Sequence record: MK773491.1
Direction: 5' to 3' (one strand)
Length of the DNA: 64,000 bases
Part shown: in pieces, positions 11,890-59,474 of the stretch
How positions within the stretch are numbered: the first letter of the stretch is position 1
How the letters are laid out: each line of letters starts with the position of its first letter
Made by a program: the position numbers and the translations under genes
The notes under the pieces: model-generated
What the model was told of the DNA's origin: nothing
The model's input: the letters and a program-made list of their open reading frames with translations, nothing else
The model's database searches: none

Positions 11890-12534
11890 ATGGCTATTAC
11901 TCGACATTGTGGTGTAGTACGTAGTACTGGTTCTCGTGTTTTTGTTGTTTGGCGTCAGCTACCAGATGAGCCTAAAAGCTGTTTGGTAATTTATCAAGAC
12001 TCACTTCCAGAACAATATGCTAATTTCGTTATCGATCTCGTCATGGGGCGTGGACAATCATCTCTAGACCTATGGGACGTAATGGATAAAGTTGGTGTTC
12101 TAGATGGTCGTAAAATGTTAGATGTACTACACCGACTAGGTTATCTACGTCGCATTGATACTAGCAACGTTGATATGCATATTGGCAATGGTGCTAAAAT
12201 TGCCCTAGATCTACTAAACGAACAGCTAGAAGCACAAACTCAACATACTGATGGTAAAGTAAAAGAATTCAATCCTTGGGACGATAAGCAAACAGAATTC
12301 CAAGAAGTAGGTGGGATTGTTTCAAAATTACTTTCCGAAGCAGCACAGTATGAACAACTAGCAAAAGAAACTTATGAACGTGCTTATAGTTTGGAACCTT
12401 CACTTCGTCCACAAGCACAAGTACAGGAATCAATTGAAACAAGTGATCTAGTACTAACCATTCCTGAAGGTACATCCCAAACTAAAGCAATTGAGCTTCT
12501 AAAGAAAGCATTAAAAGAACGTAGTGAAAAATAA
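11890..12534 (+). CDS. Hypothetical protein
   Basis: 214 aa, GGGGAG RBS. Confidence 0.8.
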   Translation: MAITRHCGVVRSTGSRVFVVWRQLPDEPKSCLVIYQDSLPEQYANFVIDLVMGRGQSSLDLWDVMDKVGVLDGRKMLDVLHRLGYLRRIDTSNVDMHIGNGAKIALDLLNEQLEAQTQHTDGKVKEFNPWDDKQTEFQEVGGIVSKLLSEAAQYEQLAKETYERAYSLEPSLRPQAQVQESIETSDLVLTIPEGTSQTKAIELLKKALKERSEK

Positions 12535-12844
12535 GATATCAAGAGACGAAATTGTTAACATGATATTGGCTGAAAGGCAAAATCAGGTAGAGTCACCAAC
12601 GACTCTATCTGATTCAATGAAAACCAAAAATGATTGGACTGCACTAGCTGCTTACTATCTTTTTGAATCTGCTTCTCGTCCAGATAAACATGTAACTTTC
12701 AAAGAATTTCGGGAATCTCTTATTAAGGCATCTGCTGTTCTACTAGCTGCACTAGAAACTAGCTTCTCACTGGAAGATGAGAAATTACAAGATTTACTTA
12801 ATAAATTGGATTCTAATGATGACAATAACGGAACTAGCAAATAG
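12524..12844 (+). CDS. Hypothetical protein
   Basis: 106 aa, GTG start overlapping the upstream gene. Confidence 0.7.
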   Translation: MKNKISRDEIVNMILAERQNQVESPTTLSDSMKTKNDWTALAAYYLFESASRPDKHVTFKEFRESLIKASAVLLAALETSFSLEDEKLQDLLNKLDSNDDNNGTSK

Positions 12845-30077: not shown

Positions 30078-32348
30078 ATGAGTTACAGTTTTCAAGATTT
30101 ATACAATGATAGTAAAACACTTGCTCTAAGCCTAGGCCATGAGTTCATGACAATTGATCATCTAAGTGCAGTTGCTCTTAAAGTTCCAAGTGTTAAAGAA
30201 GCACTAGAATCTTTCGCGATTGACACGGATAAACTAAGTCAACGTATCGAAACTTATCTACGTGAAGTTCCGCCACCACAACTTCCAGTTTCGGTGAAAG
30301 AAGCTATTGCTTCACATCAAGTTCCAGTGTCAGTACTAGTGACACGTGTTATGTACGAACTAGAAAAACAATCAGTACTCGAACAATTAAAAAATGATGA
30401 TTTTACGATTGAAGGTTTCTTTGTTCTATTTGAATGTTTATCATTCTCCAACACGGCACTAGAAGTTGCTCTAAAAGAACAATCAATGTCCCGTTCTGAA
30501 GTTGCACGGTCTCTTCAGAATTATGTATCAGAACAACGTTCTGATGTAGATTTAACAAAAAGTGTTAAAACTGAACAAAAAGGAGGCCGTGTGGCTCAAC
30601 AGCAACCATCTTCTGGTAAGAAATCTATTGAAGATTACACTACCAACCTAACCGAGCTAGCTCGTGAAGGTAAACTCGATCCAATGATTGGTCGCGAAAA
30701 AGAACTAGTTGCTCTAATTGAAACGCTATCTCGTCGTACTAAGAAAAATCCATGCCTTACTGGTGAAGCAGGTGTTGGTAAAACACAGATTATCGATGGT
30801 CTAGCACAAGCTATCGTTGATGGTAATGTACCTGAGCACATGAAAGAACTAGAGATTCTTTCTCTTAACATGGGTTCATTCACTGCTGGTACTAAGTATC
30901 GTGGTGAGTTTGAAGAACGTGTTGATAATTTCCTAAAAGAAATTAAAAAGCGTGAGAACACCATTGTATTCATTGATGAGATTCACACTATCATGGGTGC
31001 TGGTTCCTCATCTTCCGGTACTATGGATATGAGCAACCTAATTAAACCAGCACTATCTCGTGGTGAAATTAGTGTTATTGGTGCAACTACATACGATGAA
31101 TATCGTCAACATATCGAGAAAGATGGTGCACTATCTCGTCGTTTCATGAAAATTGACGTAGTTGAACCAACATTTGAAGAAACTGCTGAAATCGTAAAAG
31201 GTATCAAATCCAAATACGAAGAGTTCCACGGTGTTACTTATGCTGAAGATGCTGTAGATGCAATCATGGAACTATCTAGTAAGTTCCTACAGAACCGCCG
31301 TTATCCTGATAAGGCTATCGACCTACTAGATGCGTCAGCAGCTAAAAACCGTACCAAATCAGGTACTAATCTAGTAGTTACCCGTAAAGATATTGAAGAA
31401 GTTGTTGCTGGCATCGCAAACCTAGAACTTTCTGTAGTTGCTTGTACTGAAAGTACTCGTATGCTAGAATTACCAGAACTACTACGTAAACGTGTGTTCG
31501 GTCAGGAAGAAGCAGTACAAAAACTTGTCGATAACGTAATGGTAGCTCGTGCTGGCCTACGTGATGCTGCAAGCGTACAAGGTGCATTTATGTTTGTCGG
31601 CCCATCCGGTACTGGTAAAACTGAAATCACCAAAGCTCTAGCTGATTCAATGGGTTCTAAACTAATTCGTTTCGATATGTCTGAGTTCTCTCAAGAACAT
31701 ACTGTTGCAAAACTAATTGGTTCACCTCCCGGCTATGTTGGTCATGACACTGGTAACGGTCTACTACTAGACCAAGTAGAGCAACATCCAAATGCTGTAC
31801 TACTACTAGACGAGATTGAAAAGGCACATCCTAAAGTACTACTAACCTTCCTTCAGGTTCTAGATGAGGGTCGTCTAACTGGTTCTAAAGGTAAAACTGT
31901 GTTCTTCAATAACGTAACAGTTATTATGACTACTAACCTAGGGGCAGCAGATTCCGAGAAACGTAGCATGAATATGGGTTCGAGTGAAACTGGTCAGGAT
32001 AAAGCTATTAAAGAATTCCTACCACCAGAATTCATCAACCGCATTGACGCAATTGTGAAGTTCAAAGAACTATCATCTGAAGCAATCGATAGTGTCATTG
32101 ACAAATTCATGTCACAAGTTTCTGCTGCTGTTGCATCACGTAATGTAACTGTAGTTCTAAATGATGATGCACGTGCATGGTTAGCGAAGAATGGCGTTCA
32201 ACGTGGGATGGGTGCACGTCCTATGAAACGGACTATTGAACAGAATATCCGTCTACCACTAGCAAAAGAAATGCTTTGTGGTTCACTGCAAAATGGTGGA
32301 GTTATCAAGTTCGGTGTTGAAGATAACAAAATCGTTATCGTAAAATAA
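30078..32348 (+). CDS. clpA: ClpA-like ATP-dependent unfoldase (two AAA modules, no ClpB middle domain)
   Basis: N-domain HEFMTIDHL, GEAGVGKT, GTKYRGEFEER, FIDEIH, GPSGTGKT, LIGSPPGYVG, LLLDEIEKAHP, GARP. Confidence 0.92.
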   Translation: MSYSFQDLYNDSKTLALSLGHEFMTIDHLSAVALKVPSVKEALESFAIDTDKLSQRIETYLREVPPPQLPVSVKEAIASHQVPVSVLVTRVMYELEKQSVLEQLKNDDFTIEGFFVLFECLSFSNTALEVALKEQSMSRSEVARSLQNYVSEQRSDVDLTKSVKTEQKGGRVAQQQPSSGKKSIEDYTTNLTELAREGKLDPMIGREKELVALIETLSRRTKKNPCLTGEAGVGKTQIIDGLAQAIVDGNVPEHMKELEILSLNMGSFTAGTKYRGEFEERVDNFLKEIKKRENTIVFIDEIHTIMGAGSSSSGTMDMSNLIKPALSRGEISVIGATTYDEYRQHIEKDGALSRRFMKIDVVEPTFEETAEIVKGIKSKYEEFHGVTYAEDAVDAIMELSSKFLQNRRYPDKAIDLLDASAAKNRTKSGTNLVVTRKDIEEVVAGIANLELSVVACTESTRMLELPELLRKRVFGQEEAVQKLVDNVMVARAGLRDAASVQGAFMFVGPSGTGKTEITKALADSMGSKLIRFDMSEFSQEHTVAKLIGSPPGYVGHDTGNGLLLDQVEQHPNAVLLLDEIEKAHPKVLLTFLQVLDEGRLTGSKGKTVFFNNVTVIMTTNLGAADSEKRSMNMGSSETGQDKAIKEFLPPEFINRIDAIVKFKELSSEAIDSVIDKFMSQVSAAVASRNVTVVLNDDARAWLAKNGVQRGMGARPMKRTIEQNIRLPLAKEMLCGSLQNGGVIKFGVEDNKIVIVK

Positions 32349-53048: not shown

Positions 53049-53078
53049 TTGGGACAAACTGGAAAAATGTGATATAAT
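53049..53078 (+). promoter_or_regulatory. TTGGGACAAA / TGTGATATAAT promoter (copy 4)
   Basis: Upstream of gp55-47-46. The spacer is 1 nt shorter than in the other copies. Confidence 0.85.
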
Positions 53079-57165: not shown

Positions 57166-57192
57166 AAAGGGAGCTATTAGCTCCCTTTTTTT
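57166..57192. terminator. Bidirectional terminator; the endonuclease VII stop codon lies in its loop
   Basis: AAAGGGAGCT-ATT-AGCTCCCTTT followed by a T tract. Confidence 0.8.
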
Positions 57193-57671
57193 ATATTAAG
57201 CATATCCAACTTTCCTTCTTTTATTAATTTTCTGGCTTGGTTGGCTCTTTTTTTAACATTACTCTCAGGAATTACCCCAAATGACTCTAAAATATCACAT
57301 TGTTGTTTAGCTGGTAACGCTTTATACTTTTTAACATCAATTGAAAGTGCAGTATGGTGAATTACCATCTCTTCTTCAGGTATATTTCCATTTCTCTCTA
57401 GATAATCTGCTAAATTTCGTAAGATTTCTGGTAGTGATTTATCAGTTAAATGTTTCATGTACCTATTAAAGCTATTTGTCACCTTTCCTTCCCATGCATT
57501 GCACTCATTTTGTAGTACTTCACGACAATGCTGGTGGCCTTGGTGATAGTGATCAAGTACTGGTTTGGTTATCAGTTCTTTTGTTATAGGATCTATTCCC
57601 TTTTGTTTTTTTAGGAGTTCGTTGCGATACTTTGCAGCATCTTTAGAATCCTTTAAGCGTTTTTTTGCCAT
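57177..57671 (-). CDS. gp49: Endonuclease VII-like Holliday junction resolvase
   Basis: Q.G.DPI......VLDH.H...CR.VL...CN..EGK His-Me finger. The first Zn cysteines are replaced. Confidence 0.8.
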   Translation of the reverse strand: MAKKRLKDSKDAAKYRNELLKKQKGIDPITKELITKPVLDHYHQGHQHCREVLQNECNAWEGKVTNSFNRYMKHLTDKSLPEILRNLADYLERNGNIPEEEMVIHHTALSIDVKKYKALPAKQQCDILESFGVIPESNVKKRANQARKLIKEGKLDMLNIKKGS

Positions 57672-57703
57672 ATAAAGTACTTCTCCAAAATTTTAATACT
57701 ATG

Positions 57704-57709
57704 TATTTA
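57704..57709 (-). promoter_or_regulatory. Late promoter (TAAATA) for endonuclease VII
   Basis: ~33 nt upstream of the ATG, back-to-back with promoter copy 5. Confidence 0.6.
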
Positions 57710-57715
57710 CGATTC

Positions 57716-57746
57716 TTGGGACAAACAGCAAAAAGTGTGATATAAT
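57716..57746 (+). promoter_or_regulatory. TTGGGACAAA / TGTGATATAAT promoter (copy 5) with no downstream CDS
   Basis: Same consensus as the other four copies, followed by a structured non-coding region. Confidence 0.85.
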
Positions 57747-57751
57747 ATAGA

Positions 57752-58202
57752 TACAACTCAGTGTGGATGTGAAAGCATACAAATCAAACCTGATTCACTC
57801 GAAAATGTAGAGGACAGATGAGCAGACCACACGTGCGAAGTGCAAATGAGACCCGTTAGGAGATGGCATAGTTAGTACCACCCACGGCAATGCGGCACTA
57901 TAAACAAGCGTGTTAAGCAGATTGACGCTTGCTAGATAGACATATGAGGGACGACCTTACCACATTGCTAAGGGAGTTCAATTTGAGGCTGGCTTTAGAT
58001 CCGTCTTGAATTTGAACAACATTAAGATTCGATTGTATGGATTTTAATGTATGCGTACTAAGACTACGACCGTTGCACATGACCGTGATAGAGAGAAACA
58101 GAGCAACCCGCTTTCGTTCTGACTAGTTCAGAAATTCACGATACAATAATTCCGATGCTATCAGCGTCAAGCAATATTCAGATCCTTAATTGGGTCTTTT
58201 TT
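57752..58202 (+). ncRNA. Putative ~450-nt structured non-coding RNA of unknown class
   Basis: Dedicated promoter, no ORF above the track cutoff, ~43% GC by hand count, at least eight helices and a terminator-like hairpin with T6. Confidence 0.65.
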
Positions 58203-58208
58203 ATTGTC

Positions 58209-58232
58209 TTCATTCCCCTATGGGGGGATGAA
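58209..58232. other. C4/G6 hairpin
   Basis: TTCATTCCCC-TATG-GGGGGATGAA. Confidence 0.7.
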
Positions 58233-58260
58233 ATTGCCTCAACAAATCTCGTCAAGATAT

Positions 58261-58400
58261 AAAAGTACAAATAATAAAATTCAATCATTAAAATGAATTG
58301 AAATTATGAATAACGAATGAAATGAGTTATGAATAATTGAAAATTCTTAGACAATCGAAGATTGGCTAATCAACATAAATGATTAGAAATTTAGATACAA
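58261..58400. repeat. AT-rich, A-skewed tract with TTATGAATAA direct repeats and small inverted repeats
   Basis: 21% GC (58261-58380). TTATGAATAA at 58304 and 58327. CTAATCA/TGATTAG hairpin. Confidence 0.65.
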
Positions 58401-58424
58401 AAAAACCAGCAATAAATGCTGGTT
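58398..58424 (-). terminator. Terminator for the leftward gp26/gp51-like transcript
   Basis: Minus strand AACCAGCA-TTTAT-TGCTGGTT followed by a T tract. Confidence 0.8.
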
Positions 58425-58641
58425 AGTTTTTATTTTCTTTTGAAACTTTTTTGTTATATGCACGAACCAGAAGATCCCTTTCATTTGTTGGCATATTAAG
58501 TAGCATCTCATAGGAAGTGTTAGTGATATAGACAGATATTTCCATTAGAGCCGCTTTGATCTCTTTAACATTCAGTTCCATATCACTAAGCACTTGTCTT
58601 ATTTCTTCTGGTTTGGCAATGAGAAGCTGAATCCGAAAAAA
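58423..58641 (-). CDS. Unannotated gp51-like reading frame, probably reached by -1 frameshift from gp26
   Basis: Open from the slippery site to TAA at 58423 (FFRIQLLIAKPEEIRQVLSDMELNVKEIKAALMEISVYITNTSYEMLLNMPTNERDLLVRAYNKKVSKENKN). It ends exactly at the terminator. Confidence 0.7.
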   Translation of the reverse strand, partial: FFRIQLLIAKPEEIRQVLSDMELNVKEIKAALMEISVYITNTSYEMLLNMPTNERDLLVRAYNKKVSKENKN

Positions 58642-59474
58642 TTAGATGGATCATAACGTAGTTTGTCAATTTCCCATTGATGGTGACACTCAGAGCATTC
58701 AACATCCATTTTATGACTAATACCAATTTCTTGTAACTCATCTGAAGTTTCACGTACTTCTTTAAGTGTATTTTTTGGTAAAGAACTTACCCATTCCGTG
58801 ATAAATTCATCTTCATTGACGATTTCACCATCAGGTGTTTCAATTTTATCAATACTTTTAACAATCATGTCAAAGTTCAATTGTGTCATTGCTTCAAACA
58901 CTTCAGCAAACATTTTCTTCTTCTCTTCAAGAATTTCTTCTTCATCACCTTCCATAAAGTCAATCATTTCTGCTTTCTTTTGTTCTTGAAACATACGTTG
59001 ACCGAAATCACTGTATTCTTCCCAAGTATAAGGTTTAAAGTACACTTTAAGACCATTTGAAAGTTCAACTATTGGTTGTTTTTCAAAATATGTCATAGTG
59101 TCTAGAAGATTTTGTAGATTACGGTGGAACGCACCTTCATGACCACATTCAGGACAAGTAGTTTGAATTTCATAATCTTCTTCTTTGGAAGCTACTTTAA
59201 TAGCGATCATTAATTGTTCTACGTCATTAACAAAAAGTTTACCTGCGTCATTAACACCGGGAACACAGTTCTCAATAACTTTAATTATTGCATCACCACC
59301 AATTAGTGCATCTGGTGTATTAAGCATAATTTCATCACGTGCAGAACGTGCACATACTCCTAACTTAATACTTTCTAGTACTTCTTTATCGTACTTAATT
59401 ACATTGTTACTTGAAAGTTTAACAAAGATTTCTTCAATCTTAGTATATTTCGATAGTGGGTTCATTTTACTCAT
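58599..59474 (-). CDS. gp26: Baseplate hub assembly protein / tail chaperone (gp26-like)
   Basis: NPLSKY.K...FVKL.S, ARDEIML..PDAL, D...L..AIK.AS, CPECGH and CSECHH Zn motifs, C-terminal NFF. Confidence 0.85.
   Translation of the reverse strand: MSKMNPLSKYTKIEEIFVKLSSNNVIKYDKEVLESIKLGVCARSARDEIMLNTPDALIGGDAIIKVIENCVPGVNDAGKLFVNDVEQLMIAIKVASKEEDYEIQTTCPECGHEGAFHRNLQNLLDTMTYFEKQPIVELSNGLKVYFKPYTWEEYSDFGQRMFQEQKKAEMIDFMEGDEEEILEEKKKMFAEVFEAMTQLNFDMIVKSIDKIETPDGEIVNEDEFITEWVSSLPKNTLKEVRETSDELQEIGISHKMDVECSECHHQWEIDKLRYDPSNFFGFSFSLPNQKK

Follow-up and report, generated by a model that had tools for sequence, protein, structure and literature searches.

What is transcribed from a strong phage promoter that points into a gap without genes? 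The question arises at a single locus of Salmonella phage 7t3, a Rak2-like jumbo myovirus with a genome of 349 kb. The window analyzed here is a stretch of 64,000 nucleotides of the phage record (MK773491.1, bases 186001–250000, window position 57716 being record position 243716), and an earlier note on it had proposed that positions 57716–58202 encode an unannotated, structured non-coding RNA of ~450 nt with its own promoter. Our analysis indicates that the locus very probably belongs to a genuine family of structured RNAs, which is carried by Rak2-like jumbo phages and by integrative islands in the chromosomes of Enterobacterales.

The locus is flanked by the endonuclease VII (endoVII) gene at 57177–57671 and by a small open reading frame (ORF) together with a gp26-like baseplate hub gene at 58423–59474, all on the minus strand, and between endoVII and 58423 there is no ORF of more than 55 aa. 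The promoter lies on the plus strand at 57717–57746 and consists of the -35-like box TGGGACA, a 12-nt spacer and the extended -10 element TGTGATATAAT, with a predicted start at about A57753. A promoter scan read the same site as GGGACA and TATAAT with a TG and a 17-nt spacing, matching the sigma-70 consensus at 10 of 12 positions, a near-consensus extended -10 promoter. TGGGACA-N11/12-TGTGATATAAT occurs at five sites in the window (8548, 11560, 30009, 53050 and 57717), all on the plus strand, with a chance expectation of 0. The fifth of these promoters is thus aimed at a gene-free gap, as the note had claimed. The GC content is 0.39–0.475 over 57700–58199, compared to 0.32–0.36 in the flanking genes and 0.265 over 58200–58499; the GC-rich stretch described earlier was therefore present, while the figure of ~21% given for the sequence downstream of it was slightly too low.

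The evidence for a folded RNA came from both folding energy and covariation. The plus strand from 57753 to 58203 folds to −120.7 kcal/mol with a z score of −3.29 (1 of 100 shuffles was equally good), compared to a z score of −0.68 for the complementary strand. A structure model was built with RNAalifold and an all-against-all covariation scan and tested on a MAFFT alignment of 55 diverse copies. Its 84 base pairs in 18 helical segments were 94.7% paired, compared to 76.8% in column shuffles (none of 500 reached 94.7%), and pairing fell to 39–46% when the partners were slid by 1–3 columns. The covariation score was 0.525 vs 0.19 in shuffles and 0.07–0.11 with slid partners, and 61 of the 84 pairs showed changes on both sides, though counts in variable hairpins are weakened because the alignments were sequence-based. 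The predicted fold, shown by this covariation, comprises at least 13 helices linked by three pseudoknots; for such loop-strand helices, covariation cannot separate intramolecular from intermolecular pairing. Invariant unpaired nucleotides concentrate at the junctions that the pseudoknots hold. The fold was assigned to the plus strand because G-U pairs are frequent in it. The covariation that the note had asked for in relatives was strong and extended to the pseudoknots, so that the large structured RNA was confirmed and, beyond what had been noticed, three pseudoknots, further helices and a 3′ domain reaching to ~58370 were added.

The element showed the general properties of a structured non-coding RNA gene, namely compensatory changes, strand specificity and no conserved ORF, and was compared to known families. 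A scan of the window against Rfam 15 (4227 families) gave no match at the gathering threshold, and nothing overlapped the RNA at E ≤ 10 (57600–58500) or at E ≤ 5 in four homologous loci; neither RNase P RNA nor 6S RNA had an Rfam match. A resemblance to RNase P suggested by short words read by eye was dropped, as no model score accompanied it. ARAGORN found 0 tRNA or tmRNA genes in the 64-kb window, and the earlier statement that hallmarks of tRNA, tmRNA, RNase P and group I or II introns are lacking was upheld by these scans. Group II introns and HYER-type elements (RF00029 and related) were rejected in the same way, having no Rfam match and no conserved 34-nt domain-V-like hairpin in the alignment. 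A search of the accessible literature by topic and by sequence words returned no description of the RNA. Since conservation and covariation were found and an Rfam match was absent even at E ≤ 10, "new class" is a fair description, and we rate the RNA as new, belonging, as far as sequence comparison indicates, to no family that could be tested.

Homologues were abundant in related phages. By BLASTN, the element was present in 62 phage records, all of Rak2-like jumbo phages, at 4–5 places per record and with 68–73% identity between genera; the hosts were Escherichia, Salmonella, Erwinia, Yersinia, Cronobacter, Pectobacterium, Serratia, Klebsiella and Xanthomonas. Across genera and paralogues nucleotide identity is ~70%, with invariant blocks. 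All other phage records, including those of ordinary temperate phages, gave no match. We considered that the additional BLASTN places might be the promoter only, which is true within the window; genome-wide they are full-length paralogues. Phage 7t3 carries four copies, all on the plus strand and all with a TGGGACA...TGTGATATAAT promoter, spread around the genome at 30.8, 162.8, 243.7 and 325.6 kb, the three paralogues of the window copy lying at record positions 30805–31155 (locus L026), 162777–163464 (L182, 3409–4096) and 325578–325996 (L027). Other jumbo phage genomes have 4–6 dispersed and diverged copies. Phage copies hold conserved positions, the copy between endoVII and gp26 being the most widely kept. 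A profile HMM recovered 126 copies among the fetched loci, 108 of them non-identical; because the family search started from two exact motifs, more distant members may be missed. The element was therefore conserved in these 62 records of related jumbo phages as well as in many metagenomic and bacterial loci.

Two observations concern the surroundings of the phage copies. In Vibrio phage 2.275.O (MG592671.1; L228, 303998–305698), a relative whose endoVII is 62% identical, a gene for a 566-aa P-loop NTPase takes the place of the RNA between endoVII and gp26. Genes resembling HNH or other homing endonucleases adjoin several copies, among them 7t3_0346 (record 161343–161981), ph0011 315850–316638 (L003, 4351–5139) and a gene just 3′ of the copy in L005 (RNA at ~12127–12586, minus strand), as would be expected if these were free-standing homing endonucleases targeting the conserved RNA sequence.

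The earlier note had described a phage RNA. Carriage by phages was confirmed, but restriction to phages was not: when bacterial genomes and metagenomes were scanned for motifs and then searched with the HMM, the RNA was also located in the chromosomes of Serratia fonticola, Serratia sp., Citrobacter amalonaticus, Enterobacter chinensis, Silvania and Buttiauxella, and in 2 of 5,426 complete E. coli genomes. These chromosomal copies sit, one each, in integrase-bearing integrative islands, whose commonest order is a large serine recombinase, the RNA, a convergent CI-like S24 repressor, a Cro-like wHTH protein, unknown genes and a resolvase. The element was absent from all 72,556 plasmids searched. 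A tree of the core places the island RNAs among the phage RNAs at two points, indicating transfer between phages and islands.

The neighboring genes of the islands were also surveyed. One element family (L066, L073, L039, L125, L134, L161, L174 and others) additionally encodes a 286-aa protein and an LprI-like protein, and its members may be satellites, small prophages or defense islands. In E. coli LR-29-1 (NZ_AP027515.1; L181, 15997–26341), an island of ~11 kb with the RNA lies between ffs and ybaA. Besides a tyrosine integrase disrupted by IS3 and a resolvase, it carries genes for DuOB, DUF488 and DUF4326 proteins, the first two of which match the candidate defense system PDC-M45. ADP-ribosylglycohydrolase genes occur near the RNA at 8 of 92 loci, directly 3′ of one paralogue group (7t3_0553, L027 26163–27128; also L025, L015, L007, L083 and L075) and no more than 5 kb away from the RNA in two kinds of island (L066, 2364–3998; L143, 1035–2039). 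A conserved protein partner was sought and not adopted, as a search of 50,697 phage records gave no homologue of the 286-aa protein and ADP-ribosylglycohydrolase alone recurs, weakly. An RNA-guided recombinase was likewise considered, with large serine recombinases 5′ of the RNA in ~12 island loci, and dropped because these recombinases are absent from phages.

The promoter accompanies the RNA across these carriers. Homologues in phages and islands are preceded by a similar promoter, in which TGGGAC, TGGAAC or TGAAAC is followed by TGnnnTATAAT or TATACT, and island copies keep the type TGAAAC plus extended -10, which resembles the "divergent RpoD-like" promoter of phage CBB (PMC5259590). The -35-like box in all three versions differs from the sigma-70 box TTGACA and is retained even in bacterial islands, which hints at a dedicated factor. 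In the window, the promoter at 53050 sits 5′ of a gene for a gp55-like late sigma factor. The earlier suggestion that gp55 and the RNA may be co-regulated has the common promoter motif as its sole basis.

The extent of the RNA differed from that first proposed. A pattern scan confirmed the AGATCC/GGGTCT hairpin followed by T6 as an intrinsic-terminator-like element on the plus strand (58180–58203, hairpin 58180–58197), which had been taken as the 3′ end and likely is the predicted 3′ end of a ~450-nt form. The conserved unit, however, is ~620–650 nt long and extends to ~58370. Among 85 copies that have the landmarks, this insert was present in 35 and absent from 36, so that it is a facultative internal terminator, and the 3′ domain beyond it must belong to the transcript in much of the family. 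Alignments showed the 3′ domain to be common to all paralogues and islands. It begins (58209–58254, plus strand) with the hairpin UUCAUUCCCC-UAUG-GGGGGAUGAA at 58209–58232, in which C/G pairs are 95–100% paired with many U-G to C-G changes, and continues with the conserved single strand CAAAUCUCGUCA at 58243–58254. The remainder (58295–58368, plus strand) consists of a long hairpin with a conserved loop of the ACGAAGUGA type and a second hairpin at 58348–58368. The outer helix of the long hairpin (58295–58299/58342–58346) is 90% paired with changes on both sides in 5 of 5 pairs; its inner stems (58302–58307/58333–58338 and 58310–58314/58326–58330) were drawn by eye from the alignments. Two short words, CGUCA and CGAAGUG, are found a single time each in both the core and the 3′ domain. 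A bidirectional intrinsic terminator found by pattern scan at 58404–58433, on both strands, follows the unit and would also end the convergent genes on the gp26 side.

Between the two parts of the 3′ domain, the alignment of phage copies revealed GATATAAAAG (58256–58265, plus strand), a box resembling a T4 late promoter of the TATAAAT type. The TATAAA(T/A) box 3′ of CAAAUCUCGUCA is found in phage copies and not in island copies. For phage CBB, ATAAATA is the reported late-promoter consensus (PMC5259590), and the 3′ domain might also be transcribed late by itself.

The core of the RNA spans ~420 nt on the plus strand (57753–58170), has full-length nhmmer matches in 126 loci, and combines many helices and the three pseudoknots with invariant or near-invariant unpaired stretches: GAAAAUGUA, GAUGAG, CGGCAAUGCGGCAC, GAUAGACAUAU, UAAGGGAG, CGACCGUUGC and GAGAAACAGAGCAACCCGCUU. 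All of the core features below are on the plus strand. From the 5′ end, an irregular hairpin at 57790–57817 presents the conserved loop GAAAAUGUA and has closing pairs (57790–57792/57815–57817) that are 93% paired, 2 of the 3 with changes on both sides. The short hairpin at 57822–57836 (57822–57824/57834–57836) is 100% paired, flanked by conserved GAUGA and GA, and its middle pair is UA in 28 copies, AU in 14 and CG in 13. On the basis of covariation, the helix 57839–57843/57895–57899 encloses the hairpin 57853–57856/57884–57887; the two are 99.5–100% paired, with 3 and 2 pairs, respectively, changing on both sides, and the tip of the enclosed hairpin is variable or, in some paralogues, missing.

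The next hairpin (57905–57931, helix 57905–57910/57926–57931) changes on both sides in 6 of 6 pairs, and its loop makes pseudoknot 1 (57916–57969), in which 57916–57919 pair with 57966–57969 in 90% of cases, with both-sided changes in 3 of 4 pairs (e.g., GC 20, UA 19, AU 9). It is followed by a hairpin at 57945–57959 (57945–57948/57956–57959) with the covarying pairs AU 33/GC 8 and AU 36/GU 11/GC 8. This hairpin replaces the CCTTA/TAAGG helix (57955–57973) of the earlier note, which showed no covariation, contained mismatches wherever the sequence varies, and clashed both with the new helix and with a pseudoknot. A long variable hairpin occupies 57976–58017; the three base pairs at its foot all covary and are 97.5% paired, so that the stem originally drawn here was supported in part, at its foot. 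Many copies carry the module UACAAUAUAGAUCCGUC in this hairpin, the window version being UUUAGAUCCGUC at 57990–58003. Depending on the copy, the module occupies either this hairpin or the position of the hairpin at 58117–58133 (L003, L027, L158, L168 and others), and in this it behaves like a movable tertiary-contact module, as judged from its placement in the alignments.

The 12-bp hairpin at 58019–58050 is 95% paired with both-sided changes in 12 of 12 pairs, and its loop makes pseudoknot 2 (58032–58147), between AUUGUAU at 58032–58038 and AUACAAU at 58141–58147. All 7 pairs of this pseudoknot change on both sides and it is 99.7% paired; the 7t3 paralogue at 162.8 kb pairs CUGAAUU with AAUUCAG at the same place. 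Pseudoknot 3 (58072–58107) joins GUUGC at 58072–58076 to GCAAC at 58103–58107 inside the invariant loop AAACAGAGCAACCCG, and is 100% paired with both-sided changes in 2 pairs and 3 invariant pairs. The helix 58084–58088/58136–58140 encloses the hairpin 58091–58095/58111–58115 and the variable hairpin 58117–58133; the helix and the first hairpin are 99–100% paired, with both-sided changes in 4 of 5 and 1 of 5 pairs, respectively. The core closes with a hairpin at 58154–58168 (GAUGC-UAUCA-GCGUC) followed by the conserved CAGCGUCA. Read by eye, this hairpin is GAUGC/GCGUC in the window and GACGA/UCGUC in GAP32, with an ambiguous alignment register. Among the helices drawn in the earlier note, CAAGCG/CGCTTG (57905–57931), the 12-bp stem and CGTGA/TCACG (58084–58088/58136–58140) were thus supported by covariation, while the hairpin at 57766–57779, TTCTGA/TCAGAA and GATGC/GCGTC are present in the window but are variable or difficult to align among the 55 homologues.

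The note had likened the RNA to the large phage-associated ROOL (RF03087) and GOLLD (RF01998) RNAs, and the comparison is fair with corrections to length, copy number, carriers and tRNA adjacency. Like these, the new RNA is several hundred nucleotides long, has many helices and pseudoknots, is carried by phages or prophage-like elements and forms its own transcription unit. ROOL and GOLLD come from Firmicutes and from rumen or lake samples and usually adjoin tRNA genes in phages and prophages. In contrast, the new RNA has no covariance-model match, is found in Enterobacterales and their jumbo phages, has 4–6 paralogues per genome and is not tRNA-adjacent (a tRNA gene in 1 of 51 loci, and none in the 64-kb window). 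ROOL and GOLLD assemble into homo-oligomeric RNA cages as seen by cryo-EM (PMC12286853). A second comparison is offered by jumbo phage PA5oct, a distant relative of the Rak2-like phages, in which RNA-seq identified "putative lncRNAs" that are ORF-free transcribed regions of similar length (ncRNA002, 451 nt; ncRNA004, 619 nt), two PA5oct RNAs being highly expressed (PMC7318152). Homology to the new RNA was not supported: the best nhmmer match had E = 0.057 over a 47-nt hairpin, and the one neighbor compared gave no synteny, the protein beside ncRNA004 bearing no similarity to 7t3 gp26. ncRNA004 (L029, 1117–1735) has only short words in common with the new RNA, namely GAAACAGAG, GUAUAGAUUCCGU and a CCC/GGG hairpin near the 3′ end.

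What, then, might the RNA do? We consider it more likely than not that this is a new family of abundant, trans-acting, large structured RNAs with a decoy, sponge or scaffold role in phage-host conflict, a reading that draws on comparative sequence evidence. Host sigma-70 RNA polymerase would start at the extended -10 promoter, at ~57753; most transcripts of the window copy would probably end at 58180–58203, giving the ~450-nt RNA, and read-through would add the second structured domain and end at 58404–58433, giving ~680 nt. The RNA itself, rather than a message, leader or antisense RNA, would be the product and would act in trans, its high dose being supplied by several strong promoters; such a dose is plausible given the 4–6 copies per genome with the same promoter (four in 7t3). 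The invariant nucleotides at its junctions would make up a specific binding site or an active site, and the RNA would serve as a binding platform, whether decoy, sponge, or scaffold of an RNA-protein or RNA-only particle, whose target may be some factor that enterobacterial hosts, or their defenses, have in common.

Several findings led to this proposal. Downstream of 77 copies we found a convergent ORF in 34 cases, no ORF in 14, and a co-directional ORF with a Shine-Dalgarno site in 29. Island RNAs face the convergent CI-like repressor gene, and the window copy ends at the bidirectional terminator. In many contexts the RNA stands by itself, and hence it is no obligate leader. A trans-acting product was suggested because the fold is conserved and non-coding, has its own promoter and terminators, and in about half of the copies is followed by no co-directional gene; a decoy, sponge or particle scaffold was favored because the carriers are giant lytic phages and islands with defense-type cargo, with transfer between them. 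Four points weigh against the proposal. First, the sole RNA-seq in the group is that of PA5oct, whose lncRNAs have no detectable homology to the family. Second, ADP-ribosylglycohydrolase, at its 8 of 92 loci, is the only protein family common to phage and island neighborhoods. Third, the co-directional ORF of the 29 copies lies within ~200 nt, and part of the unit may for this reason also act in cis. Lastly, dispersed copies kept at the same places in the genome are also what a cis-acting element, of DNA or RNA, would show.

A possible but unlikely variant is a machine made of RNA alone and required by giant phages in high dose, either a new large ribozyme or a multimeric particle, which the island copies would mimic, titrate or hijack. 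Under this idea, the loop-strand "pseudoknots" would be partly intermolecular contacts in a self-assembling particle, and the copies in the islands would have been captured, with the unusual TGAAAC plus extended -10 as their promoter. If it is true, an arms race would be fought with structured RNA.

We think it rather unlikely that each copy is a replication origin whose transcript stays hybridized to the template as an R-loop and primes DNA synthesis, the islands replicating likewise. Origin transcripts that prime DNA synthesis include RNA II of ColE1 and the R-loops at T4 ori(uvsY) and ori(34). The likeness lies in a structured RNA of ~500 nt driven by a promoter, with G/C runs and AT-rich DNA downstream, and T4-type genomes also have several origin sites each, comparable to the 4–6 dispersed copies at conserved positions per ~350-kb genome here. 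The strong promoter would suit such a role, as would a purine-rich transcript strand (GC and AT skew positive over 57700–57999), the T-run, C4/G6 hairpin and AT-rich stretch (26% GC) 3′ of the core, and islands that lack recognizable replication genes in the stretches examined. The fold, however, is under much stronger constraint than in ColE1 RNA II or the T4 origins, and three covarying pseudoknots with invariant loops indicate a folded RNA product beyond a primer. Moreover, cumulative GC skew has no turning point at 57.7 kb, the island RNA is transcribed toward a repressor gene, a layout that does not readily suggest an origin, and, unlike ColE1 RNA II, the element is in 0 of the 72,556 plasmids and gave no RNAI (RF00106) match in the Rfam scans.

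Improbable as well is a cis-acting leader or regulatory cassette, in which the promoter and a long 5′ leader would control terminator read-through, stability or translation downstream; it could work by processive antitermination, as in HK022 put, or as a riboswitch-like sensor. In some copies the arrangement does recall the put/EAR elements, with a promoter-proximal structured RNA, then a terminator, then genes: besides the 29 of 77 copies with a Shine-Dalgarno ORF shortly 3′ of the last hairpin, the terminator-like hairpin separates core and 3′ domain in 35 of 85 copies, and 3 of the 4 copies in 7t3 lie inside long co-directional gene arrays. The RNA is nevertheless 5–8 times larger than put/EAR, its size and complexity are well beyond those of known leaders, and its internal terminator is facultative, being missing in ~40% of copies. 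Nor does it hold a constant position 5′ of a coherent gene set, as a riboswitch or leader would: downstream genes vary between paralogues, many copies have no downstream gene, and the 34 of 77 that face a convergent gene or terminator, the window and island copies included, have nothing to regulate.

A catalytic RNA, either a new large ribozyme (self-processing or trans-acting) or the degenerate remnant of a self-splicing intron, appears quite improbable. Invariant unpaired nucleotides gathered at pseudoknot-held junctions would fit an active site, and GAUGAG-hairpin-CGAAG at 57817–57841 looks, by eye, loosely like a hammerhead core. A hammerhead core combines CUGAUGA and GAAA in a three-way junction that holds a cleavage site. 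The motif here, however, reads CAGAUGAG, its first bases are paired, the conserved U4 is lacking, and no Rfam ribozyme or intron matched at E ≤ 10, so that a hammerhead ribozyme was rejected. The group I introns of T4-type phages are of similar size, pseudoknotted, found in T4-related phages and sometimes adjacent to HNH endonuclease genes, as are some copies of the RNA. Unlike them, the RNA is intergenic and has no Intron_gpI (RF00028) match; since it splits no gene and is equipped with a promoter and terminator of its own, it is not an intron. Finally, it is hardly credible that the locus is no RNA gene at all, made up of small protein-coding ORFs or a chance GC-rich spacer: GenBank records of 7t3, Hallingskeid and others do annotate hypothetical proteins of 30–55 aa here, but the short ORFs are intact in only 1–8 of 55 homologues, substitutions are compensatory within helices, and nucleotide identity with invariant blocks extends across genera and paralogues. 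In 7t3 these annotations are 7t3_0444 to 7t3_0447 (window 57643–58288), mostly on the minus strand, and they look spurious.

Intricate, conserved folds are seldom found in large RNAs, and most such RNAs have proved to be ribozymes or central machines. The orphans OLE, GOLLD, ROOL and raiA have been hard to study owing to awkward hosts. The family described here occurs in phages of E. coli K-12, Salmonella, Serratia and Erwinia and in E. coli islands, which makes it accessible to routine genetics, RNA-seq, pull-downs and cryo-EM. Dozens of phage genomes in GenBank are annotated with spurious small ORFs over this element, an error that its recognition corrects. With 4–6 copies per genome, three pseudoknots and exchange between phages and islands, the RNA would be functionally important to its carriers and is probably tied to phage-host or phage-island conflict.

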